From NCBI GenBank assembly GCA_029953675.1, contig JAMWBK010000003.1:2728001-2792000 (forward strand): 64,000 nt of DNA. The letters are read 5' to 3'. Every line of letters begins with the position of its first letter. The stretch's first letter is position 1. A model generated the notes under the pieces. The model was not told the origin of the DNA. It saw only the letters and a program-made list of their open reading frames with translations, and did not search any database. The translations under genes and the position numbers were made by a program. Origin of the DNA: Rhodosorus marinus CCMP1338. Lineage: Eukaryota; Plantae; Rhodophyta. This document shows, piece by piece, positions 10,105-63,750 of this stretch.

Positions 10105-12277
10105 ATGTTGATGTGTATGAATAACAACCTGGACTTGACAACGGAAGTCTCTATAAAGGAATTTTCCTCTGAAAATTCCTTTTTGATGACACCTAGTGGA
10201 CACTCTCCTTCAGGGCTGGGTCCCGGGCCAGAGAATAGCTTTGGGTGGAAACCATATCGGTACGTTCTTTTAGCTGCTAAACACAGTCTGGTTTTCAATC
10301 CGTCAGTGGCCTGCCCGGACGCTGCTGGTCCGTTTGTTGTAACCTGTTTGCTAAATGTCACCGCTGTCCCACTCTTGTTTCTGGCGATGCAGGGGTGCCG
10401 TTCGGGTTGACTCCCCGAATGCAGCCTCAATGATGTGTACGGACAGGTGGCCTGAAGGTCTGAGCATCTCTGCTAGTTTGGAGAACGAGCTGTCCTGGGA
10501 TATCGTCAAAGAGGAGTGGAGATGGCACAAGACATGGCGTCTCCCAGAAGTGTATGTGCATGTCTCTGCGTTGGAAAAGGTGAACATGAACGTTGCGCGT
10601 TTGTCGATGGTGTATATGGATCCAAGAGCGGGAATGCGCGAGATCAAAATGTTAGGCTCTCAGGGGCACACATCTCCGTTCTATTCCACACTCGTAAATG
10701 GAAAGGCGACGTTCTCGCGTATTAGACTGACGGGGACCTCCAACAAATGTGGAGGGGAGAGGTTCCATCTCCTCGTCTCCTTGGTGCCCGATGTGGCAAA
10801 TTCGTCTAATGTGAGTACACCGTTCAAAATTGTATGCAAGCAAGTGGCATCGTAGAATAAAATTTCTACAGTGTAAATTGACCCGGTGATTTTCCCTGCG
10901 CACCGTTTACAGGAAATTTATTCGCTCATTTCGAGCCCATTTTGTGTATATTCTCGACGTGACGCTGACAAAACTAACAGAGGAAGAAATCAGGACGAGT
11001 CTTCAAAGTGGTCTACGTTCCCTCCCGTGATGCTCTCCAACAAGCTCGCTAAGAAAACTACTGATAAGAAGGGCTCAAGTACCACGGAGGAGATCACAGA
11101 TTCCTGGGTGGGAATCATTCGGTACTTCCAAGCGCCGAACATTAGAGGGAAGAACAGGTACCCGCTGCTAACGTGTCTCCGCTTTAGCTCGGTGTTGATG
11201 ATTCTACGGAACACCGACCTGTTTCCAGAAGCTGACGAGAGGGCGCTGCGGAATCTGTTCTGCGTCTCGGGATTCTCATTGAAGTGCGCACTTTCGGTTT
11301 GCACCAAGTGCAATCCAAGGACGCATAAGAAGGGCACTGCTCCTCTGTGGTTTGTGACCTTGAGAAACTTTCAAACCTACAAGCCAGCACACGTGAAGTG
11401 GTTGATAGATCACATGTACTACATGAAATCTCCCGAATTCAGGTTCATCGCCGATCCGAAGGTGCTACCGTCGAAATACGTTCCAACGGAGAACGTTGCG
11501 GAGATGGAGGCTCTGTACACAAGGCTGTATGAACTAGAGGCTAACGCCAAGTCCGCCCCGAAGAAGTCAGCTCCTTCAGCTCCTTCAGCACCACTGCCGA
11601 AAATTGCTGAACCGAGCAGTACGGAGACGGAGGGGAGCAGTCGACTTTCGCAGCAAACGCTGGTGCTCCGCTCAAAGTACGCGGATAAGGATGTCGGATC
11701 GTATGCTAAGCCACCTCTGAAATTCGATTCAGAGCAGGAGAGCAAGAGATTCGAACAGTTTTATAGCCAGATCCATCTCGAGACTGAGAGCCTGCTGGAC
11801 CGTGTCTCTGATGAGGTGGCTGGCTTGTTGACGAACAGTTCGGAGGGGAGAGTACACGGCATTCGGCAGCTAATTTTGAGGTGTGCGCAGAGCTTCGAAG
11901 TACACGCGTTTGCGGAGGAATCTGTGCTGTTTGCGGAAATGCAGAAGAGGAACCCTGGAATTTGCGAGTCATACAAAGTGGATCACGTTCGATTGAGAGA
12001 CAAGTTTAGGGGGCTATATGAGGTTGCTAGTCAACTCAGCGAACCCACACAGATTTTCCTCAAGGGTGTACAGTTTGCTGAAGTAATGCGAGAGCACCTG
12101 AGGAAGGAGAGAGACCACCTGTTCCCTTGCTTCCTGCAGACGTTTTCCGAGGAAGAGCTTGGTGCTCTCTGGAGAGCCGCCCAGATGGCAATGCAGATGA
12201 AAAGCTTCTCCCTCAGATCTCAGTCCAAGGACAGTGCCCAGAGTCAAACACCTCGGAGTAGCGACTCCGGTTTCTAA
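10105..12277 (+). CDS. Putative Ig-fold (NDT80/CudA/CBP60-like) DNA-binding protein with a C-terminal hemerythrin/HHE domain; 3 exons (10105-10259, 10393-10810, 10913-12277)
   Basis: GT-AG introns join three ORFs in frame. N-terminal GKATFSRIRLTGTSNKCGGERFHLLVSL...ISSPFCVYSRR. C-terminal four-helix pattern H...HAFAEE...DH...EHLRKE. Confidence 0.75.
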
Positions 12278-16563: not shown

Positions 16564-17712
16564 TCACAAGACAGCGTCAGTATCGTCTCGAATTCCAAGC
16601 TCAGAAATGAAACTTTTCCACCTATCTGAAGACTTTTCAAACACATACGTTACTGGCAATACGCATACGCCAGATCCACCAATTCGTCGAAGCTGCTCCA
16701 CAGCATTGTACATACGTTCTTTCGGAATAATAAGACCAACGGCATACATGCCCAGATCAGATCCACGCGGCGGGATCACGGTGGAAATGGTCGGCCCATC
16801 CATCCCACGTAGATCCGTTCCAGCTCCAAGACGTCGAGCTACATCACCTGGGGAAGATCCTCGCACGTTGGCGATTAGATTGCACTGGTCTGATCCAACG
16901 TTGTGTGCCTCTATTCTCTCCATGAGTTCTCGAGCCAAGATTCGAAGCCGTGTTCCTCGCTCGTCTTGTCTAGTCAGCGCACTGCGATTGCCTATTAGTT
17001 GCATCGTAGAGGTAAGCAGGGTTCCTCCTTCAATCTCCTTCAAGAGATTTTCTCGGAGCGTGACTCCAGAGGACACGAGGTCAACAATGCAATCCGCAGT
17101 CCCCATTTGTGTTGAAGCTTCCAGGGCTCCATCCATGTACACTATTTGGTAGTTCCTGATCCCCGATCTCGCAAAGAATTTCTTCGTTTGTGCGCTGTAT
17201 TTCGAAGCGACCCGCAGCGGACGCTCAGAGTTAGCTTTCAAATGCTTTGACAGGTCTTCCATCCCCGTAATATCGCCCCAATTCATCGGTACGCCCACGG
17301 CGAGCCGGCACTGGCCGTATCCAAGATCCTCGTGCACCGGCACGATCTCGTTGCTCTCCCCACCGTGCTCAACGACAAGATCGTAACCAGTAAATCCCAG
17401 CTCTACGGTTCCATCCCGAACTTTCCTCGCGATGTCCGGAGGTCTTTGCAACCAGACTTCCACATCTTCAAAACCCTTCAGAGCAGCGGTGTACTGCCGT
17501 GGGTTGGAGATCCTCAGCTCAGCCCCAATGTCACGGAGCAAATCCTTCGTATCATCAAGAATCCCTCCCTTGCTCGGCACAGCAATCCTTATCTTCTCCC
17601 GCGATATCGCATCCCCAAACCCATTCGGCCCTAGGCAAATTCTCACCCTCTCTCTCGACGCACTAAAGCGCACGTCAGTCACCACCTGCAAAAACCCCAA
17701 TCCCATTCCCAT
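16564..17712 (-). CDS. hisG: ATP phosphoribosyltransferase (long form, plastid-targeted; His biosynthesis)
   Basis: KIRIAVPSKG, RPPDI, GFTGYDL, GALEAS..MGTADCIVDLVSSGVTLRENLL, GMDGPTIS and a C-terminal regulatory domain. Confidence 0.96.
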   Translation of the reverse strand: MGMGLGFLQVVTDVRFSASRERVRICLGPNGFGDAISREKIRIAVPSKGGILDDTKDLLRDIGAELRISNPRQYTAALKGFEDVEVWLQRPPDIARKVRDGTVELGFTGYDLVVEHGGESNEIVPVHEDLGYGQCRLAVGVPMNWGDITGMEDLSKHLKANSERPLRVASKYSAQTKKFFARSGIRNYQIVYMDGALEASTQMGTADCIVDLVSSGVTLRENLLKEIEGGTLLTSTMQLIGNRSALTRQDERGTRLRILARELMERIEAHNVGSDQCNLIANVRGSSPGDVARRLGAGTDLRGMDGPTISTVIPPRGSDLGMYAVGLIIPKERMYNAVEQLRRIGGSGVCVLPVTYVFEKSSDRWKSFISELGIRDDTDAVL

Positions 17713-28346: not shown

Positions 28347-29282
28347 ATGAACGCGACACGCCTGATTGCTCTCGCTGCCATTCCTCTTACGGCGATTCAA
28401 TTCTACCAAAGACCTGGGATGGCAAGTAGTGCGACTAAGAATGACAAGGAGGTTGATGATGCGATGAGCGATGTGACGACTGAGAGCAACGGTGGGAAGG
28501 AAGAGACTTGTCCCGAGCCGAACGAAAAGAGGCTGGTTCTGAAATGTGGCGCACATATGATCCCTGACTCGCGCAAAGGAGATCAAGGAGAGGATGCATG
28601 GTTCATCCAAGATAGCGCTGTAGGCGTTTTCGACGGCGTCGGCGGCTGGAGGAGGAAAGGTGTGGACCCTGGGAAGTATTCGAGAGCACTCAGGGACGGC
28701 TCTGTACAGTATATAAAAGAGCATGGAGTTGGTGACTTAAAATTGGCTCTAAAGCATGCAGTTGAAGGCAATCCTAACCTGGGAAGTTCCACTGCTTGTT
28801 TGGCAGCCATGCCTCAAAGCCCTTCGCTGCAGGTACTGAATTTGGGGGATTCTGGATTGATCCAGTTTCGGAAGGAGCAGATAAAGTTCTCTACACCCGA
28901 ACAACAGTTTCGGTTCAACTTTCCTTATCAATTAGGAACGAACTCGTTATGTACAGTTGATGACTCTGATGCGTACGTCCTAGAGATGCAGACGGGGGAT
29001 ACAGTAGTGCTGGCTACTGACGGTGCACTGGACAATCTTGGCGAAGGCGAGATGGAATCCCTGGCTAGGCTGACGAAGGACTTCAGCCCGAACAAAGCCG
29101 CGGAAGAATTTGCAAAAACAGCGAATCGAAACTCGCTGGACCGGGAGTACGATAGTCCGTTTGCTCAGAACGCAAGAAAGGTTGGAAAGAATTACTCCGG
29201 AGGGAAGCAGGATGATATCACGGTGGTCCTTTGCAGAGTATGTGAGCAGTCGAAGAGCTGGTTACCATGGTCCAAGCTCTAA
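28347..29282 (+). CDS. PTC7: PP2C-family protein phosphatase, PTC7 type
   Basis: GEDAWF, GVFDGVGGW, GSSTAC, NLGDSG, QQFRFNFPYQLG, LATDGALDNL, GGKQDDITVV. Confidence 0.93.
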   Translation: MNATRLIALAAIPLTAIQFYQRPGMASSATKNDKEVDDAMSDVTTESNGGKEETCPEPNEKRLVLKCGAHMIPDSRKGDQGEDAWFIQDSAVGVFDGVGGWRRKGVDPGKYSRALRDGSVQYIKEHGVGDLKLALKHAVEGNPNLGSSTACLAAMPQSPSLQVLNLGDSGLIQFRKEQIKFSTPEQQFRFNFPYQLGTNSLCTVDDSDAYVLEMQTGDTVVLATDGALDNLGEGEMESLARLTKDFSPNKAAEEFAKTANRNSLDREYDSPFAQNARKVGKNYSGGKQDDITVVLCRVCEQSKSWLPWSKL

Positions 29283-30729: not shown

Positions 30730-31594
30730 TCAGTTGTCGTAAGAACGGCATTCATCTGCCTCTGGTGATTCCTTGCAGTATTGGGCGAGTGGGTCGTTCT
30801 CATCCTCAAACTGGCTCAGCAAGTACTCGGCGGATGACTTTTCATATGCGCCGGTATCCACGTTGAGGGCAGCGACGACTCCGTCATTGGCGATCATGGA
30901 GTAGCGGGCCGAGCGGATCCCGCCAAAGGCTCCAGTATCTTTCTCCAATCCGATAGCCTTTGTGAACGCGGCATCACCGTCGGCGATCATCTTGACCTGT
31001 TTTCAGTTGGCGTAAACGCATCATTAGGGGTGATCCACAAGTCCACGCACTAAGGTATGCGCGCATGACTTCAGCCTTACCACGCCTTCTCCTGCGATCT
31101 GCTTCATGAAGGCCGTCATCACAAACCTATCATTCACAGAGAGCACGTAAAGGTCTTCGACACCCTTCTCCTTGAGCTTGTCCGCGTTCTTCACGAAGGA
31201 CGGGGCATGGGACTCGGTGCAAGTTGGGGTAAGCGCGCCCTGAGAATAAAAAAGACGTTTAAAATCCTGCCTTAGACCATCGCACAATTCGTCTTCCCCA
31301 GCCCTCTCCCCTCCTTTCCGTTTCAAAACCGTCAGTCCTCACAAACTAAAAAGCGTACAACCGATAGCAAGGCCAGCTACGCACCGGAACTGCGCATACC
31401 GCAACGGTCTTTCCCTTGAAAATATCCTCGACGGTCATAGATTCTCCATCAACAGTAAGGGAAAGCTCCATCGGCAGCTGATCTCCAACCTGCAGAGACA
31501 TCCTCATCGCCGATCGCTGCACCCTGCGGGACGCACGCTTCGCCCCAACGAAGGACGACCGACCCATCGACACCCCAGACACGAAACCAATCAT
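30730..31594 (-). CDS. Plastid type-II peroxiredoxin with a C-terminal CP12-like extension; exons 31594-31385, 31239-31081, 30996-30730
   Basis: Transit peptide MIGFVSG, VPGALTPTC..SH.P, SVNDRFVM, ADG...FTKAIG, RS.RYSMI..DG.V; ends DPLAQYCKESPEADECRSYDN*. Confidence 0.93.
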
Positions 31595-35658: not shown

Positions 35659-38600
35659 ATGGCGGAACAATCCGAAACAGATCTGCTGCAGAATGCTTCA
35701 AAGCTGCCAGTCGCGGAAAGGCTTGCACACAAGCACTGGAAAGTGCGAGAAGCTGCCTGTGTTCGGATGGCAGAGAGATTCAGTGAAGCTGCTGAGGAAG
35801 ACCAAGTTTTTACCGAAACGCTAGCGTTCATCCCAAAAATTGTTCGCGATTCAAACGCAGCTGTACAATTGGCGGGCCTTGGAACTGCAGGAAGATATGC
35901 CGAACTCGCTCCGGAAATTCTTGTTAGGCAAATTGCGCCTGCTTGCGGTAAAGCAATCGCCGAGAAGACGTTTACGGGTCGACCTATCAACAGGAAAAAG
36001 GGAGCCGAAACTGTTCTGTCCTTTGTCTATGGGGAGGCTGGTGAGCTGGTAGTTGATGGACTGATCGCAGTCGGATTTTCCAGCAAGAATCCGAAAATAA
36101 CAGCCGCCTGCGTTGGGGCCGTGAAAGACGCTGTAGAGAACTTTGGAGTGAAAAGTGTCGGTGTCCAATCGATTGTTAAATCCCTTCCTGCCCTTCTCGA
36201 GCACGGCAACGGTGACGTTCGCAACGCGGCAAAATCGCTCACATTGGAGCTGCAAAGATGGCTAGGAGATGCGATATTTGGATCCCTGAAAGGTGTACGG
36301 GAGGTCACCTTGAAAGAGCTCCAAACTTTGGCGGACGAAAACCCGAAGAAAGGCAAGCCGGTTGCGTTGAAGGTAACGAAGAGTCTCGAGCAGAGGACGG
36401 CGACAGAGTCAAATTTTGGAGCAGCTGATGAACCGGATGGAGAGCTAAACTTTGGCGAGGACAATGAGCCCGCAGTTGATTTGCGGGAGACGATCGTCCT
36501 CGCTGATCAGTTGAAGACGCTCAAAGTAACAATTGGAGACGAAAAACCGTTAGACTGGGTAACAGCAGTGGAACACTCCAAGTGGAACTACAGAAAAGCT
36601 GGGCTGCAAGCCATATGCTTGGTGCTTGAGAACAGAAGCATGGAAACGGCTGATGGACTCGAGTCCATTGTTCCCAAGTTGAGAAAGATATTGGCGAAGG
36701 ATGCAAACATACATGTCGTTGCCGGAGCTGCAATGGTATCAGCGAGCCTGGCGAAAGCACTCTGGAACAAATTTCCTGTGGCGGCCTGCAAGGTGTTGGT
36801 GTCCTCTCTTCTCGGAAAATTCAAGGAGAAAAACAGACTTGTAATCGAGGCAATTTCAGGAGCACTTGATGCATTGTTTGAGTACAAGTGCGTCTCGATC
36901 AAAGATATTCTGGAAGACCTAGCCGAAGCTCTCGAGGCTAAAACTCCAAAATCGAAGATTGAGACTCTCAAGTGGTTGAATCGATGTCTCCTTCTGCGGT
37001 GTTCAGCGGCTGTTGATATTCTGAAGGATCTCATTCTCATTCTCCTAAAGAGCTGCGAAGATCCCGCTGCAGAAGTGCGGGACTTAGCGATAATGAACCT
37101 CGCAGAGCTCGTCTTCAGATTTGGGGATAAGAAAACTCAACCGTACCTGGCGAAACTTGACAAGATCAGAACAGACAGAATCTTAGAGCTCGTGGGAGAG
37201 AAAAAATCATCCTCTCAGGGTGCGAAGGTTCAGAAAGGTAAGAGCTTTGGTTCTGTGTTATGATCTGTTACATTGATCTAAAAAGTTTTCCCTCGTCCCC
37301 ATCGTGAAACATAGAAGAAGCACCAGCGACCACAGACAACGCAAGACAGTTGACTGGAGAGGCCAATGGTACAGATGGCACAGCGGAAAAGCAGAGCCCA
37401 GCAGTGCCTGATTTCGTATCAATTCAGCGCTTCTCTGAGGACGAGCTGGCCGCGAAGATGATGCCTTTGTTCCCCGGCCTGGACATCTCACAGCTGAGTG
37501 CGAAGAGTTCGTCGGCTCGTAAGGTCACCATTGATGCGATAAGGGATGTTTCCGAGGCCAAAGAACAGCTATCAGTTGAGCAAGCGTCGATTATCCTTTC
37601 GGCCATTACGACTAGTCCAGGATTCAACGACAGTCAGTTCACGTGCCTGAATTCGAGGATCGAGGTGGCAAGTGTGGTTCTCAAACTCTGTGAGAGCAAG
37701 CCCGTGGCCGGAGAAGTGATCGAGGAGATAGTTGCAGGCATAGTCGTAAAGCTGGGAGATTTTAAGAGTGGTAAACTTGCACACTGTTCGCTGCTCGAAA
37801 TCTCAGATTATTCGTCACCCGAGCTTGTCTATAAAGGGTGCCTCAAAGTGGCAAGTACTTCAACAAACCCTCGAACGCTTGGGGGTATCTGTGACATGTC
37901 CAGCGCAATCGTCAGCAAGTACGGAGCTTTTATGAGTTTGGAGGATGCTCAGCTGATTGTGTCGAAGGGGGCCGACTCCGCTGCTCCCGCGTTGAGGGGA
38001 TCTGGGATGGGATTCGCGGCGGTTTACGATTACCAATCTCGAAACGACGAGGTCAAGAGCTCAATCCGTGAGGATGATAAACTTCTGAACGCGTATGAGA
38101 AAGCATTTGCAAAGTTGGACGGAGAGGTCATTGTGGTCAAGAAGGCGTTGTCGGTGGTTAATAGTGAAGTCAAACCTGTTGAGGAAACATCCTTGGGACA
38201 CAGCACCGATTCCCATAAACGAAATTCCATCGATGTTAACCAGATTGCAGCGAGAACACCCGATCGAGCTCGATCTGGATCCAATCGTCATACGCCAGGG
38301 TCGTCCGCTCGCAAGAAAGCACGTGCGCGAGTGAACGCACCTAAGACAAGTGTTGCGGATGAGAACTTGAGCCCTGATCGGTCATTAGGAAGTGAACGAC
38401 TGGATGCAGCTATTGAATCGCTTCAAGCGCAAGGAGTGGATGGAGACTGTAGAGCATCGGCGCTAGCGGAGATCGAGCAAGTAGTGAAAACAGAAAAACT
38501 GTCGGATGATGCCTGGTTTACTATTCTGGAAGTGGCTTCAGCGCGACTTGCGGACGCCCACCGCGAGGCGTCATCAACCGCCTTCCGTATTTTTGTAAAA

Positions 38601-57093: not shown

Positions 57094-60000
57094 ATGGATC
57101 CCGATGAAACCTTGGTGGGCGGGTTGGATCCGCTTGTAAATGAGTCAGAGGACCTGATTCAGTTATGTTCTGGGATAGCAGGCCCTCCGCGCTCAGCGAA
57201 ACTCGACGATTTCAAGGAGATACAGACTATTCTTGAAAAGTACCAGGTGATATGATTTTAAAGACCACGAAGCCATGGCCGGAGAAGGGTTGCTTTTTTT
57301 ATTAACAACGGAGTGTTCTTGGATTTACAGGAAAAATCACAACTATTGGATCCTTTGCTACCGCGCGTTACCAGCTCGATTATTGAATTCTTGCTCGCCA
57401 ACGACGATGCTGGCTCCCAGGCAGCTTTTCGGGCCCTCTACACGCTGTTCAAAGTCCGAGGATTCAAGAACGTAGCTCGACATCTTCCGCACACAGTCAA
57501 CCTCTTCGAAACTGTCGCTTGCCGATTGCTTAATACGCCGGAAGAAAATGAGGCAAGTTAAGAACGACAGGATACATTCCTTGAAGACTCTTCAACTCTG
57601 TGAATCTTACCACAGCAAAGTCTGCTTCATGTTCTTCACCAAAAACCTACAGCTCTGGCATCAAGAATACTGCCTTTACGTTTGGCTAAACAAACTATGT
57701 CTTGTACCTTTCGATGTCTCGTCAATGGACTCCGGATCAAACCTGGTTGACAGCCTGGTAGATCGGGCAAAGCGCGGGGTGTGTAGAAGTGGTCGCCCCA
57801 GCGATGGAGCATCTGAATTCTTGGCGCATTTTCTGGCTCGAGAGGATATGTCTAGGCAGCTCGAGGAGGTTGTCTGTTGGTGTCTTGCCGAGAGTTTTGC
57901 GTCCAACCGCATCCGACTGCTTGCAAAGATGCTCAAGCATGGTTCGAGGAAAACCCTGCTAAATTTGATGAAACCTCGCCTCAAGCTCATGTCCCAGCTT
58001 CTCCGTTCGAGTATAGTAGGATCGTCCCTGGAGCGACTTCACCGGTCTAAACTTGTCCAGAGGTCATGCCTCCTACTACTGCCGCCCAAGCTCGCCGGCT
58101 GGCGCTACAAGCGAGGTGCTCGCATTATCTTTCAATCGACAACCTCAATTGCTCATGATAAGACTATTGGCGGGTCATCGCGGGCTAATCTTGCAGACGA
58201 TGGAGAAGAATGCTTGTCGTGGTCTTCTCTGACCAGTGCGGAGGTTGAGTACGTGGAGGATTCAGTTGATACGCTTCTCCATATGCTAGCAGATCATGAT
58301 ACAATCGTCCGATGGTCCGCAGCAAAAGGCCTCGGGAGAGTTACTGGGCGGCTTCCTCAAGTCTTGGCAAGCGAAATCTGCCAGGAGATACTGGCTATTC
58401 CGACGGAAAGCATGCGGGATGAATTCAGATGGCACGGATCGTGTCTTGCCCTGGCGGAGCTGGCTCGCCGTGGACTCGTGGTTCCAAGCGATGGCCTCCT
58501 CAACCCGCTCGTACAAACAACAACAAAGGCGCTACGTTTTGACGCGCAGAGAGGGTCCGCATCCGTTGGTTCACAGGTAGTGCCTGAATCCCTGACTATA
58601 TCCTTCTCATTTACAAACGTTCTTACGCGCTTCTCTTGTTCTCTTTGCCTTCAAGGTCCGAGATGCAGCTTGTTACGTGTGTTGGGCCGTAGCTAGGGCT
58701 TACGCAGCTGAGGACATCAGCTCCTTTGGCCGGACCTTGGCCGAAGTTCTTGTACCTGCAGCCCTGTTCGATCGAGAAATCAGCTGCCGCCGAGCCGCCA
58801 GTGCCGCCTTGCAGGAGTGTGTTGGTCGCGTAGGTAAAAACGTGATTCCATGTGGCCTCGAGCTTCTTCCGTTGTTGGATTTTTACACGCTCGCGGACCG
58901 GAGGGGGAGTTATTGCCATCTGGCACCCAAAGTAGCGCGTTTGAGCGGTGAAATATACCTCGGTCCACTCGTGGAGGAGCTGACAGAGCGCAAGTTATGT
59001 CACTGGGATGAAAACATTCGTGAACTTGCTGCGCAATCGTTAGGGAACCTGTGTGGTACAGTCAGCGATGATATCACGATCGAAAATGTTGTGAGCACAT
59101 TGGCCGCTCGTGCGACAGCAAAAACAGACCCACAGCGATACCATGGTGCACTGCATGGACTAGCGAGAACCGTGCAGCATACGAGAACTGAGGGGAAAGC
59201 CGTGGACGCTGCTCGTGAGATCGTCGCTACCGGTTATGTTAATAGAGTGGCAAAGGGCAACGCGAGAGCAGATGAGATCCTCGCGCTGTCTCTTCTCGTC
59301 GCAGCTCTTGCGAATTCTGGGTATTACAGCCCCGATCACACCGTTCTACGAGCACCACGGGCGATCGTTCTGGAGGCGCTGTCGTCGAGAGCAAAGCCCG
59401 TGTACAGTGCAGGAAGCACCGCAGCTCTTGCTCTGACCAGTGTATCTTCAGAAACTGAGGGAGACGTTGTACAGTGTATATGTGACGGGATGGAGCAGGA
59501 GGGCTTTGCGTTCGCGGCAATATCCTTGACCCACAAGAACCTGTCTGAACCTGTTCGTCTGGCAGCGGTGAACTCAGAGCGACCCGAGGCTCGGAAGAAT
59601 GCAACACGGGCGCTGGTTGAACTGGCGGGGAAGGGCCTCGTCGACGCAGATACGGCGTTGGAAACGTTAGTTGAGGCCGGCAATGACTATCAGCTGGACA
59701 ACAGAGGGGATGTAGGAAGCTGGGTGCGAGAGGAGGCAGTGGAAGGGATCTCGAAGCTCTTCGTTGCTTGCACAAGTGACACGCTAGCCAAAAGAGCGTT
59801 GGGCGTATTGGTTAGGCAAGTCCTGGAAAGGTTGGATCGGGTGCGCGCATTTGCAACGAGAGCGCTCCTCCATATAGCAAAGAGTGACGCAAGGTTCCCG
59901 GAGATAGCTGCCGTGATGCCTGGAAAGCGGAGTGACCTGGGAACGGGCCAGATACTTGATATTGCGCCTTTGCTCTTCGAAATCGACTATGTGATGAAAG

Positions 60001-60557
60001 ACGCCCTCTTAGGGGTCATTGCGAGTGCGACGGTTGCGGGAAGTCTTTCTTTGCTGGCCCGACAGGCTCTTGTCAAATTTTCAGATGTAGAAGTTGTTCT
60101 TGACCTTTATGTAGAGTTCCGAGGGGATAAGCGACTTTCACGTCCGATTCTCCAGGCTTTGGAGCTTCTTGTATCACATAACCTGCCGGATGATGGACCG
60201 TGGAGTCTGCGATGCGCACAGGAGATTTGCTCGGACTTGAAAGGATCCAGGGATATTGCTAGGCTAGCGTCGACCGTAAGTCTATTGTTGAGCTTACTCT
60301 CGTATCCGACCTCTGCCTGCAGAGCTTCAAGAGCTTTGTCGAACTTACTCTGCCATCCAATTCCCCGAGCGAGGCGGCTCGCAGCTGAGGGCATGTACTT
60401 CCATTTGATAAGCGGGGAGGGCGGTGAGGACGTCGCATGGGCCTGTGACGTCATTGGGCAAACCTTGTGGGAGTCCACCCCTGTCAGAGAATTGCAGCCA
60501 ATTAGAGATCGAATATCTGCAATAGTGTTAACTTCTTTGATACAAGAGGAGGCCTAG
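57094..60557 (+). CDS. TBCD: Tubulin-folding cofactor D; multi-exon
   Basis: ILEKYQE.SQLLDP.L, KVRGFK, DTIVRWSAAKGLGRVT, WHGSCLALAELARRG, VRDAACYVCWAVARAY, FDREISCRRAASAALQECVGR, DYQLDNRGDVGSWVRE. Confidence 0.96.
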
Positions 60558-61101: not shown

Positions 61102-63750
61102 TCACCTCCCTTGTGACTGTCCGCCTCCAGGAGTAGGTGAGTTCCAGGCGCTTGGGTTCACCCTCCCTGAACGAGCGTTTCCCGTCCGCAGGCCACCGCC
61201 ACTACCCCAGGAATCTCCCCCCTTGTTGTCGTACCTATTCTTTGCGCCCTGTGAAGAATTATCCTGGTAGCGCGTGCCATCCTTCTTGAAAGCACGCGGA
61301 TCGGCACTAGTTCGTCCTCTGAACCCGTCGCCGTACGCCTCTCGCCCACTGTCCATCCGTCGCCCGTCTGGTCTTGGCGTTATAAGCTCCCTCAAATCCC
61401 TCGTCCCTCGAGAAGGTCCCCCACGGGCGATCTGCATTACCTCTCCACTAGGATCCCCGGCGAGTTTGATCTGTGGAAGCTTGTGACCCTGCGGCACCTG
61501 TTGTGGAGGTGGAGGACCTCCGTCCTCAGTTTTTAGTTTTTCATTCAACACATCGATACCTTCATATTCGTCTCCAGAGACATCGTCCTGTTGAAGAAAG
61601 ATTGAGCATGTTGAGTAAATCAGTTCAGTGAATTACTTATGCAGCCAAAGTATTACCTCGTCGGTGTCGTAGTCGGCCCAATCGGAACCGGAACCTTCAT
61701 CAATGGCAATAGATGAGACTTTCGTCGGTGTATTCTTGGACTCAGAAACTGTGAGTTTGACTTCCTCCGGCTTCGTTGGAGCTTTCACTTCCGGCGGTGG
61801 TGGCGGGGGTACAGTCTGTACAGAAACCGACGTTGTTTCTGGTAATGGTATGGGTTCCGTCTGAGTGTCTTTCTCAGCCGAAGGCGTAACCTCCTTCAGC
61901 TTTTCAATCTCGGCATTGAACTTTTCGATCTCATCCTTGTAGGTGACCACCTGCGCCTTCTCCATATCCAAGCCCTTCTTCAGTTCTGCAAGCTGCGACT
62001 TGAGCTGGCGAACCTCAACCTGGCTCAAACTCAAGGACTCTTTCAAAGGCTCGATCTCATGGTCTTGGTTGACAACCTGAGGCGCGGGTGTACTTTTCAC
62101 TTGATCGCGGTGGTGCGACTCCTTTTCTCTCCGGGTTCCTTTTGGAAAGCGCTTGGTAGCATGGTTTCCCGGTCGTCCTTCTCCGTACGCAGGTCCTTGA
62201 GCAGGTCCATGTCCTTTGTAGTGGTCAGACGGCTTCTCTTTTCCATGACGTTTGGTTGCAGCTGACTCCTTGGTTTCCGTTCCAGCTTGCGCCCTTTCAG
62301 CTGACTTCTCATCCCTTTTCTGCCATCTTTCCTCCTTCCTCGACGAGCCGTCCTCCCTTCGAACATGACTATCTCTTCTCCCAGGAGCATCCTCCCTCCT
62401 CGACGATTTATTTTCCTTTCTAACCGCAGTTTCCTCTCGCTTCTGACTGGAAACTTCCTTTTTAAGAGGAGGCTCCTCCCTCCTGGCCAGATGCTCTTCC
62501 TTTCTCACAGCACCAGCGTAACTCTCATCCTTTTTCACAAATACCCCTTCCTTTTTGCCTTGAGTATCGCCCCGTTTAGGATGAAACTGGGCGTCCTCCT
62601 TCCTTGCTGCTGGAGTATGCTGTGAAGACGGTTGCTGCGAAGTCGATGAGCTCGATGTTTGTTGCGCTGGCTGTGGTGGCTGTGCATGTGGTCTCTGGGC
62701 ATGCTGTGGTTGTGCCTGTGGTCTTTGTACTTGTAGCTGCTGCGCCTTCGGTTGTTGCGCCTGCGGTTGCTGCACCTGCGTTGGTTTGGCCTGAGTTGGT
62801 TTTCCCTGCGTTGGTTTTGCTTGCGTTGGTTTTGCTTGCGTTGGTTTTGCTTGCGTTGGTTTTGCTTGTGTTGATTTTGCCTGCGTTGTCTTTTCTGTCG
62901 ATGGCTGCTGCTGCGGTGGCTGCTGTTGCGGCGGTGGCTGCTGTTGCGATGGCTGCCGTGTCGGTGGCTGCTGTGGCGGTGGCTGCTGTGGCGGTGGCTG
63001 CTGTGGCGGTGGCTGCTGTTGCGGCGGTGGCTGCTGTGGTGGTGGCTGCTGTTGCGGTGGCTGCTGTGGCGGTGGCTGCTGTTGCGGTGGCTGCTGTTGC
63101 GGTGGCTGCTGTTGCGGTGGCTGCTGTTGCGGTGGCTGCTGTTGCGGTGGCTGCTGTTGCGGTGGCGGCTGTTGCGGTGGCGGCTGTTGCGGTGGCGGCT
63201 GTTGCGGTGGCTGCTGTTGCGGTGGCGGCTGTTGCGGTGGCTGCTGTTGCGGTGGCGGCTGTTGCGGTGGCGGCTGTTGCGGTGGCTGCTGTTGCGGTGG
63301 CGGCTGTTGCTGTGCCGGCCGATGCGGTGGCTGCTGTTGCTGCGCCGGCTGTTGCTGCGCCGGCTGTTGCTGCGCCGGCTGTTGCTGTACCTGCGGTGGA
63401 AGTACTTGCGCTTGCTGCACCTGATGTGCCATCTGCGCTTGGTGTGCCAGCTGCGCCAGCCTTGCTTGCCTTAGCTGCTCATGTTGCTGCATTTGCTGCA
63501 GTTGTTGCAGATGTTGCGGATGTTGCAGATGCGCAGCAAATTGAGGAGGATACGGCATGTGCTGCGGCTGTAGCGGATACTGCATTTCTGGCACTGGCAT
63601 TTGGGCCTGCGGTGGTGCCCGGAGCGCAGGAACCCCCGGATCCTCGGGGGCTACGGGCTTCTTCGGTATTGGCCTCCATTCCTCGGCACCGGCCCTTCCA
63701 GCAAACTTCGAATGCCCCTTTTGAGATTTTCTTGCATCCGACTCCGTCAT
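61102..63750 (-). CDS. Gln/Pro-rich low-complexity protein with a short coiled coil and an RG-rich C-terminus; at least 2 exons, 3' end uncertain
   Basis: 705-aa ORF joined in frame (donor after TDE, acceptor before 61587) to the 61102-61551 ORF; no family recognised. Confidence 0.65.
62770..63390. repeat. Coding tandem repeats (15/18-nt units encoding QQPPQ/QQPPPQ; 15-nt units encoding TQAKP)
   Basis: Visible arrays of gctgctgttgcggtg and gcgttggttttgctt. Confidence 0.95.

Follow-up and report, generated by a model that had tools for sequence, protein, structure and literature searches.

The known contexts of CP12-type sequences, according to CP12 reviews and a 2026 survey, are GapB, ADK3, argininosuccinate lyase, cyanophage CP12, and cyanobacterial CBS-CP12. 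The last 21 residues of CP12 (residues 55 to 75) form its GAPDH-binding domain, a two-turn helix followed by residues that enter the GAPDH active site, and Glu69, located directly before the second cysteine, makes the binding of CP12 and the binding of NADP(H) mutually exclusive (McFarlane et al., PMC6800369). The CP12-like extension of Chlamydomonas reinhardtii ADK3 is reported to bind GAPDH and to inhibit its NADPH-dependent activity (Thieulin-Pardo 2016 and Zhang 2018, as cited in PMC13491260 and PMC9406205). The tail disulfide of GapB depends in vivo on the 2-Cys peroxiredoxin (Prx) pathway, and red algae reportedly possess GapA and CP12 only. Here we analyzed a window of 64,000 nucleotides (64 kb) from Rhodosorus marinus CCMP1338 (contig JAMWBK010000003.1, positions 2,728,001 to 2,792,000; "the window" refers to this whole stretch) and describe a gene at window positions 30730 to 31594 in which a Prx5-type peroxiredoxin ends in a CP12-type tail.

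The Prx-CP12-tail gene is a nuclear gene of the red alga R. marinus and consists of three exons, all in phase 0, which are separated by two GT..AG introns. Its features are as follows (window positions; L002 is a transcript contig of a second R. marinus strain).

30730..31594, minus strand: complete coding sequence of the Prx-CP12-tail gene (ATG at 31594, TGA at 30732-30730; 211 amino acids [aa]; matches KAJ8907088.1)
31385..31594, minus strand: exon 1, aa 1-70, with a presequence of ~33 aa followed by the start of the Redoxin domain with Cys67
31240..31384, minus strand: intron 1, 145 nt, GTGCGT...CAG, missing in transcript contig L002
31081..31239, minus strand: exon 2, aa 71-123, with the active-site motif P70-G-A-L-T74-P-T-C77 (Cys77 codon at 31221-31219) and V102-L-S-V-N-D
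30997..31080, minus strand: intron 2, 84 nt, GTAAGG...CAG, retained in some MMETSP transcripts (P0063)
30730..30996, minus strand: exon 3, aa 124-211 plus stop, with the C-terminal Redoxin half (catalytic Arg151 and Arg154) and the CP12-type tail in one frame
30733..30795, minus strand: aa 191-211 (DPLAQYCKESPEADECRSYDN), predicted GAPDH-binding module of the CP12 type; Pfam CP12 is matched by aa 187-210 (30807-30736)
30777-30775, 30753-30751, and 30750-30748, minus strand: tail codons for Cys197, Glu205, and Cys206, respectively

The 211-aa product, MIGFVSGVSMGRSSFVGAKRASRRVQRSAMRMSLQVGDQLPMELSLTVDGESMTVEDIFKGKTVAVCAVPGALTPTCTESHAPSFVKNADKLKEKGVEDLYVLSVNDRFVMTAFMKQIAGEGVVKMIADGDAAFTKAIGLEKDTGAFGGIRSARYSMIANDGVVAALNVDTGAYEKSSAEYLLSQFEDENDPLAQYCKESPEADECRSYDN, is 100% identical to the R. 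marinus NCBI model KAJ8907088.1 ("hypothetical protein"), which is encoded on a contig of 3.35 Mb. The spliced translation contains YVLSVND and, exactly as given in an initial annotation made from the sequence, the motif PGALTPTC and the CP12-like C terminus DPLAQYCKESPEADECRSYDN, which is followed by the stop codon. A single continuous exon (open reading frame [ORF] 30730-30990) encodes both the tail and the C-terminal Prx half, and the fusion is therefore independent of any splice model. The last exon proposed initially was confirmed by transcripts of the second strain. Its MMETSP0011 transcriptome contains a complete 211-aa ORF with the tail (P0064, 92% identical), and the 2.8-kb contig L002, which also includes the tail, aligns as three segments, the gaps between them being precisely 31384-31240 and 31080-30997. 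Between the two strains, the 21 codons of the tail core differ by six synonymous and two conservative (Y196F and N211S) changes, and the ratio of nonsynonymous to synonymous substitution rates (dN/dS), based on small counts, was ~0.05 for the tail versus 0.11 for the Prx domain. At this dN/dS, the tail is clearly not decaying but is kept by purifying selection.

An intron-2-retaining MMETSP form from the second strain (P0063) ends in ...GEGVVRLKSCLL, and the short downstream ORFs P0061 and P0065, starting at Met126 or Met111, were also called. Most likely, the intron-2-retaining form represents RNA that had not been spliced and not a regulated isoform consisting of the tail only.

An artifact (faulty assembly, a chimeric gene model, or the end of a pseudogene in decay) was considered as an explanation of such a protein, and we found no point in its support. 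It conflicts with the exon shared by the tail and the C-terminal Prx half, with the agreement between the genome and transcriptome sources, which are independent of each other, with the conservation of the fusion in numerous metagenome contigs and no fewer than five named taxa, and with the tail dN/dS of 0.05. A splice-model or assembly artifact in particular was rejected on the basis of the shared exon, the NCBI protein match, and the transcript contig that lacks both introns. We therefore give an artifact a negligible chance and regard the fusion as almost certainly real, expressed, and under selection.

The central claim of the initial annotation, a Prx fused to a CP12/GapB-type C-X8-C tail, was borne out by Pfam Redoxin and CP12 matches above the gathering cutoffs, and the agreement exceeds what chance would give. 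The match to CP12 (PF02672) scored 27.4 bits against a cutoff of 22.7 (E value of 6e-6, or 6.5e-7 with the tail alone), and its alignment spans only positions 47 to 70 of the 70 profile positions. The tail matched the extreme C terminus of Arabidopsis CP12-2 (6KEZ and 3QV1; E value of 2e-6), with 14 of the 21 residues identical, and aligned end to end with the C termini of the GAPDH-bound CP12 chains in 6KEZ, 3QV1, 3B1J, and 6GFO. The C termini of the T. elongatus and Synechococcus CP12 proteins also matched, and the GapB extension and CBS-CP12 did so more weakly. Amino acids 191 to 211 map one-to-one onto residues 55 to 75 of T. elongatus CP12, with Glu205 at the position of Glu69, and the cysteine loop C197-KES-P201-EADE-C206 (CxxxPxxxxC) is located five residues ahead of the stop. 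Residues D191, P192, C197, A203, E205, C206, R207, and Y209 were invariant among the 14 fused tails compared, which have acidic ends (YDN, YDS, YES, YED, YDE, or YSD). The AlphaFold model of the protein predicts two helices for the tail, one of two turns (192-199) and a short one (204-207), with a predicted local distance difference test (pLDDT) score of ~80.

The CP12-tail motif occurs once in the six-frame translation of the window, in which no further CP12 or Prx pieces were found. The AWD_VEEL motif of the PRK-binding helix was searched for in all frames of the window without a match, and Trp is absent from the protein. The N-terminal cysteine pair of CP12 is also not present in the protein, whose other cysteines (Cys67 and Cys77) are both inside the Prx fold; this pair is absent in some genuine CP12s as well, e.g., in that of Galdieria (CP12 review). 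By its sequence, the tail is the complete 21-residue GAPDH-binding domain of CP12 without the PRK-binding half. The identity "CP12 protein" was rejected for the missing PRK-binding half, which places the protein in the class of carriers of a CP12-like C-terminal extension, together with GapB and ADK3.

The Redoxin match (PF08534) covers aa 35 to 182, with 105.2 bits against a cutoff of 26.6 and an E value of 3.4e-30. The closest solved relatives are of the Prx5 type, namely, Vibrio vulnificus Prx3 (7.7e-38), the poplar type II Prx, and human PRDX5. In a fold search that took in the Prx domain only, the AlphaFold model (pLDDT, 86) was superposed on V. vulnificus Prx3 (5K2J) with a TM score of 0.93 and a root mean square deviation of 1.2 Å. 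Residues P70, T74, C77, R151, and R154, i.e., the P-x3-T-x2-C motif and the active-site arginines, are invariant in an alignment of 47 homologous sequences. The protein can thus be assigned to the Prx5-type (type II) peroxiredoxins with intact catalytic residues and is predicted to have peroxidase activity.

Only four cysteines are present in the Rhodosorus protein: Cys67, the peroxidatic Cys77, Cys197, and Cys206. The second cysteine of the C-x-SVND site, which the initial annotation described as replaced by Leu, is indeed missing, but the alignment places the site at Val102 (V-L-SVND) and not at Leu103. As also noted initially, there is no PRDX5-type C-terminal resolving cysteine, none being aligned in the aa 172-184 region. 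The Rhodosorus Prx domain would therefore count as 1-Cys by the resolving-cysteine criterion, which separates mechanistic subclasses and is not decisive for membership in the Prx5 subfamily. The additional Cys67 (codon 31396-31394) is located in the β-strand preceding the active site (VAVCAVPG). It is common to Rhodosorus, Bangiopsis, and one MMETSP relative and is conserved only in those three red-algal species; the position is occupied by Phe or Val in Porphyridium, in the fused metagenomic proteins described below, and in the aligned unfused relatives.

The Redoxin domain is preceded by an N-terminal presequence of ~33 aa (MIGFVSGVS...RRVQRSAMRM), which the bacterial homologues lack and in which aa 1 to 27 have a pLDDT of <50. 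Phe-containing presequences are typical of plastid transit peptides in red algae. Since a Phe-containing start is kept in every full-length red-algal member (MIGFV..., MVVGF..., and MAFVSS...), the protein is probably targeted to the plastid, in line with the plastid-type protein proposed in the initial annotation.

For the distribution of the fusion, a profile built from the C-terminal 62 residues, which comprise the tail and the adjoining end of the Prx domain, was searched against 1.84 billion representatives. The full-length fused matches fall into two groups, a red-algal one (lineage 1) and one from metagenome contigs (lineage 2). Lineage 1 comprises Rhodosorus (two strains), Bangiopsis sp. 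CCMP1999 (fused Prx 55% identical), Porphyridium purpureum (KAA8496642.1, annotated just as "Peroxiredoxin-2C"), and Porphyridium aerugineum, as well as one further MMETSP transcript and one SRA-derived fragment. The red-algal survey suggested at the outset thus found the fusion also in Bangiopsis and both Porphyridium species, and lineage 1 spans at least the Stylonematophyceae and the Porphyridiophyceae. The P. purpureum gene model seems to begin ~35 residues too early (internal MAFVSS...). Lineage 2 (P0076, P0178 to P0183, P0188, and P0082) originates from marine or other metagenome contigs and has a Prx domain of the green-algal PrxII/PRDX5 kind. One of its contigs, 29 kb in length, is clearly eukaryotic, with densely packed, high-GC genes; the Dus neighbor on it is most like those of green algae and plants, at only 45 to 50% identity, pointing to Archaeplastida without a close reference. 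The host of lineage 2 is probably a green picoeukaryote, as judged from these sequences.

Each fused lineage is 49 to 59% identical to unfused Prx proteins and only 36 to 42% identical to the other fused lineage. In a simple distance (neighbor-joining) tree based on 154 columns, lineage 1 and lineage 2 were each monophyletic in 98 of 100 bootstrap replicates, and the two were jointly monophyletic in none (0/100). Lineage 1 was placed by bacterial-type Prx5 proteins and lineage 2 by the PrxII proteins of Dunaliella, Haematococcus, and Coccomyxa. A single ancient fusion common to all carriers was rejected on the basis of this tree (joint monophyly, 0/100). Because the two lineages are never jointly monophyletic and have different unfused sisters, a Prx5-type enzyme appears to have gained the CP12 tail at least twice, independently.

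The nearest relatives of the fused Prx domain of the red algae are stand-alone Prx5 proteins of proteobacteria (~54 to 55% identity; sister clade in the tree) and not the type II Prx proteins of green algae, plants, or animals. The sequences thus hint at a bacterial origin of the red-algal Prx-CP12-tail gene. The tail-only matches of the database search included red-algal-looking CP12s. Three other entries had unusual architectures: (i) the 74-aa ORF P0072 contains a CP12-type tail twice in tandem; (ii) P0172 apparently has two CP12 units within one protein; and (iii) P0084 is a lineage 2 Prx in which the frame continues past ...ADECR for 80-odd residues, a run-on that may reflect an intron, a frameshift, or a genuine variant.

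The cysteines of the Prx domain differ among the carriers. Other candidate resolving cysteines are gone in Rhodosorus, Bangiopsis, and P. purpureum. P. aerugineum retains the second cysteine of the C-x-SVND type in the alignment, and lineage 2 retains both the C-x-xxND cysteine and the PRDX5-type resolving cysteine, like its unfused green sisters. The initial annotation had counted the lost alternative cysteines in favor of the tail as a resolving element, which holds for the first three species but not for P. aerugineum or lineage 2. A general association between the fusion and the loss of alternative cysteines was accordingly rejected; Cys67, too, is not conserved. Because P. aerugineum and lineage 2 keep their own cysteines, the tail does not seem to be simply a replacement resolving cysteine.

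We propose that the protein is a plastid Prx5 with a CP12-derived GAPDH-binding tail, that the tail docks the enzyme on GAPDH in a redox-dependent manner, and that Cys77 is the likely oxidant of the tail; we assign this overall explanation a probability of about 0.6. Under oxidizing conditions, Cys197 and Cys206 would be joined in the C-X8-C disulfide, whereupon the tail, flexible in other conditions, would fold into a short helix plus turn and enter the cofactor/active-site cleft of NAD-bound plastid GAPDH, where Glu205 would occupy the place of the 2'-phosphate of NADP(H). The Prx would thereby be reversibly tethered to GAPDH, NADPH-dependent GAPDH activity would be damped, as it is by CP12, the GapB extension, and Chlamydomonas ADK3, and thioredoxin would reverse the oxidation and the tethering in the light. 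Redox-dependent docking on plastid GAPDH is the best-supported function and a reasonably probable one, because the GAPDH-contact features are conserved everywhere and because ADK3 and GapB provide precedents. The most likely oxidant of the tail would be the sulfenylated Cys77 of the enzyme itself, acting within the subunit or across the Prx dimer, and such a transfer would provide a built-in peroxide-to-disulfide relay.

Self-oxidation by the Cys77 sulfenic acid is attractive for three reasons. The carrier of the tail is a peroxiredoxin, twice; tethered thiols react readily with Prx sulfenic acids, as is general in Prx relay chemistry; and darkness fails to oxidize the cysteines of the GapB tail in the Arabidopsis 2-Cys Prx double mutant. 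In plants, a tail of this type is thus oxidized in trans in a Prx-dependent manner. Nevertheless, we infer the plastid location, the GAPDH binding, and, above all, the self-oxidation relay from sequence comparisons, and a fully self-contained H2O2 relay, running from the Cys77 sulfenic acid via the Cys197/Cys206 disulfide to a tail that plugs plastid GAPDH, is put forward only tentatively. In such a relay, the two tails of one Prx dimer might cross-link GAPDH tetramers.

Several observations weigh against this explanation. Lineage 2 keeps its PRDX5-type resolving cysteine, and the tail would thus be unnecessary for its peroxidase cycle, which weakens self-relay as a general rule. The two Porphyridium tails (P0069 and P0174; CQDNEAADEC and CKDDAAADEC) lack the central proline of CxxxPxxxxC, which is replaced, although both tails preserve the C-X8-C spacing and the terminal E-C-R-x-Y; the 2026 survey takes the loss of this proline together with a two-residue insertion in a pedinophyte CP12 as loss of the GAPDH-binding motif. 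The missing proline would also suit a tail that binds a partner other than plastid GAPDH, e.g., another NAD(P)-dependent enzyme, or that mainly stabilizes the Prx as a conditionally disordered segment. Such a role is very improbable, as the residues that the tail matches best are those located within GAPDH in the crystal structures and as GAPDH is bound by the known carriers of the tail that have been tested to date.

The same cysteine comparison bears on whether the tail might serve docking only. It would then be a redox-gated label that parks the Prx on GAPDH or Calvin-cycle assemblies, where the enzyme would shield the peroxide-sensitive catalytic cysteine of GAPDH; any inhibition of GAPDH would be incidental, and the tail disulfide would come from general stromal oxidation pathways and not from Cys77. 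Conservation of every GAPDH-contact feature fits such a label, as do the presumably self-sufficient peroxidase cycle of lineage 2, the tethering of ADK3, a non-redox enzyme, through the same tail, and work, cited in a CP12 review, on CP12 protecting Calvin-cycle enzymes from oxidative stress. What docking alone leaves unexplained is that a Prx5-type enzyme in particular gained the tail twice, and a thiol within a few nanometers of a sulfenic acid would be expected to react with it, given general Prx relay chemistry; we consider this explanation unlikely, while giving it some weight. Conversely, the C-X8-C pair could be a resolving module only, making a 1-Cys Prx thioredoxin dependent without any GAPDH binding. 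The Rhodosorus Prx domain, with neither the second cysteine nor the PRDX5-type resolving cysteine, would suit this role, and a Prx5 with a C-terminally fused reductant is known in the Haemophilus influenzae Prx5-Grx hybrid (1NM3), a structural neighbor. However, one or two cysteines would do for that purpose; the invariant D-P, A-x-E-C-R, and Y at the CP12 positions that contact GAPDH would be superfluous, and an extreme C-terminal position would not be needed. Moreover, lineage 2 and P. aerugineum hold other cysteines yet keep the full tail, and the bacterial sister proteins function without one, so a purely resolving role is improbable. Redox-gated docking on GAPDH with Cys77 as the likely oxidant remains our preferred explanation.

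The oxidative switch-off of Calvin-cycle enzymes is still being worked out. In plants, it has been tied to 2-Cys Prx via thioredoxin-like intermediates, as outlined in a description of the pathway from 2018. The fusion, apparently made twice, suggests a direct link between peroxide sensing and carbon fixation, and a peroxiredoxin joined twice to a GAPDH-gating peptide argues, in the Rosetta-stone sense, for cooperation between the CP12-type switch and peroxidase chemistry. If the relay operates, a single polypeptide would let peroxide throttle the Calvin cycle directly, with no need for the thioredoxin or thioredoxin-like intermediates on which plants depend, and two algal lineages would have invented a peroxide-gated switch independently. 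The protein together with GapA would be a compact two-component system for direct measurement of a peroxide-to-disulfide-to-enzyme relay, with relevance for engineered peroxide sensors and for the redox control of algal carbon fixation.

The neighbors of the Prx gene are ordinary nuclear genes. A PP2C/SpoIIE-like phosphatase gene (28347-29282, plus strand) lies tail to tail with the Prx gene, an arrangement kept in the second strain, and transcript contig L002 (phosphatase part, L002 1517-2566) joins the two genes, so their 3' ends probably overlap (convergent transcription). Within the 705-aa ORF listed below, a 15-nt unit is repeated ~32 times (62902-63385; 90% matches) and is the cause of the strong AT skew in the last 2 kb of the window. 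No tRNA genes were found in the 64-kb window. The other features are as follows.

10886-12277, plus strand: ORF with a C-terminal hemerythrin HHE cation-binding domain (1.8e-9)
16564-17712, minus strand: HisG
35659-37263, plus strand: XMAP215/TOG protein
57548-60557, plus strand: tubulin cofactor D
61633-63750, minus strand: 705-aa ORF with no Pfam match

The initial annotation placed such tails on GapB and a few other fusions. The precedents GapB, ADK3, and argininosuccinate lyase agree with this and make the present fusion less isolated than was implied; the Prx would be the fourth kind of carrier on this short list. The initial annotation named no Prx fusion, and the searchable CP12 literature contains no Prx carrier; a full-text search of papers available without subscription found no description of a Prx-CP12 fusion. 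The Prx thus appears to be a new carrier of a CP12-like extension, the proteins being present in public databases under generic names.

The known systems resemble the fusion to different degrees. In cyanobacterial CBS-CP12 (5NMU; PMC6142219), a CP12-derived segment is likewise joined to another domain, with a weak match to the tail (E value of 0.9), but the protein is cyanobacterial, the partner domain is a different one, and CBS-CP12 is reported not to form the GAPDH/PRK complex. The Prx5 family (5K2J, plant type II 1TP9, human PRDX5 1HD2, and 1NM3) shares the fold, the P...T..C motif, and the arginine, and 1NM3 illustrates that the subfamily tolerates a redox partner fused C-terminally; however, no solved or named member has a CP12 module. 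Canonical CP12 (3QV1, 6KEZ, and 6GFO) has both cysteines, the central proline, the Glu before the second cysteine, and the Y-D-N end in common with the tail, whereas the Prx fusion lacks the AWD_VEEL core, the N-terminal cysteine pair, and Trp. With only positions 47 to 70 of the 70-position profile matched, the fusion is not expected to bridge to PRK as CP12 does.

GapB of A2B2-GAPDH also has a CP12-derived tail of 20 to 30 residues, whose cysteines form a C-X8-C disulfide and whose acidic end occludes the NADP site in the oxidized state, and the oxidation of its tail cysteines is 2-Cys-Prx dependent in Arabidopsis. The GapB tail is carried by its own target and is an autoinhibitor that drives oligomerization, whereas the Prx tail would have to act in trans. 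ADK3 resembles the fusion in being a complete stromal enzyme whose extreme C terminus carries nothing of CP12 but the C-terminal CxxxPxxxxC module. The two differ in their hosts, Chlamydomonas versus red algae and a probable picoeukaryote, and the Prx fusion seems to have arisen twice. Moreover, the carrier described here is predicted to be a thiol peroxidase, which makes a sulfenic acid and could oxidize its own tail, whereas ADK3 has no such chemistry; the chemistry of the carrier itself could thus drive the switch in a fusion that is recurrent.

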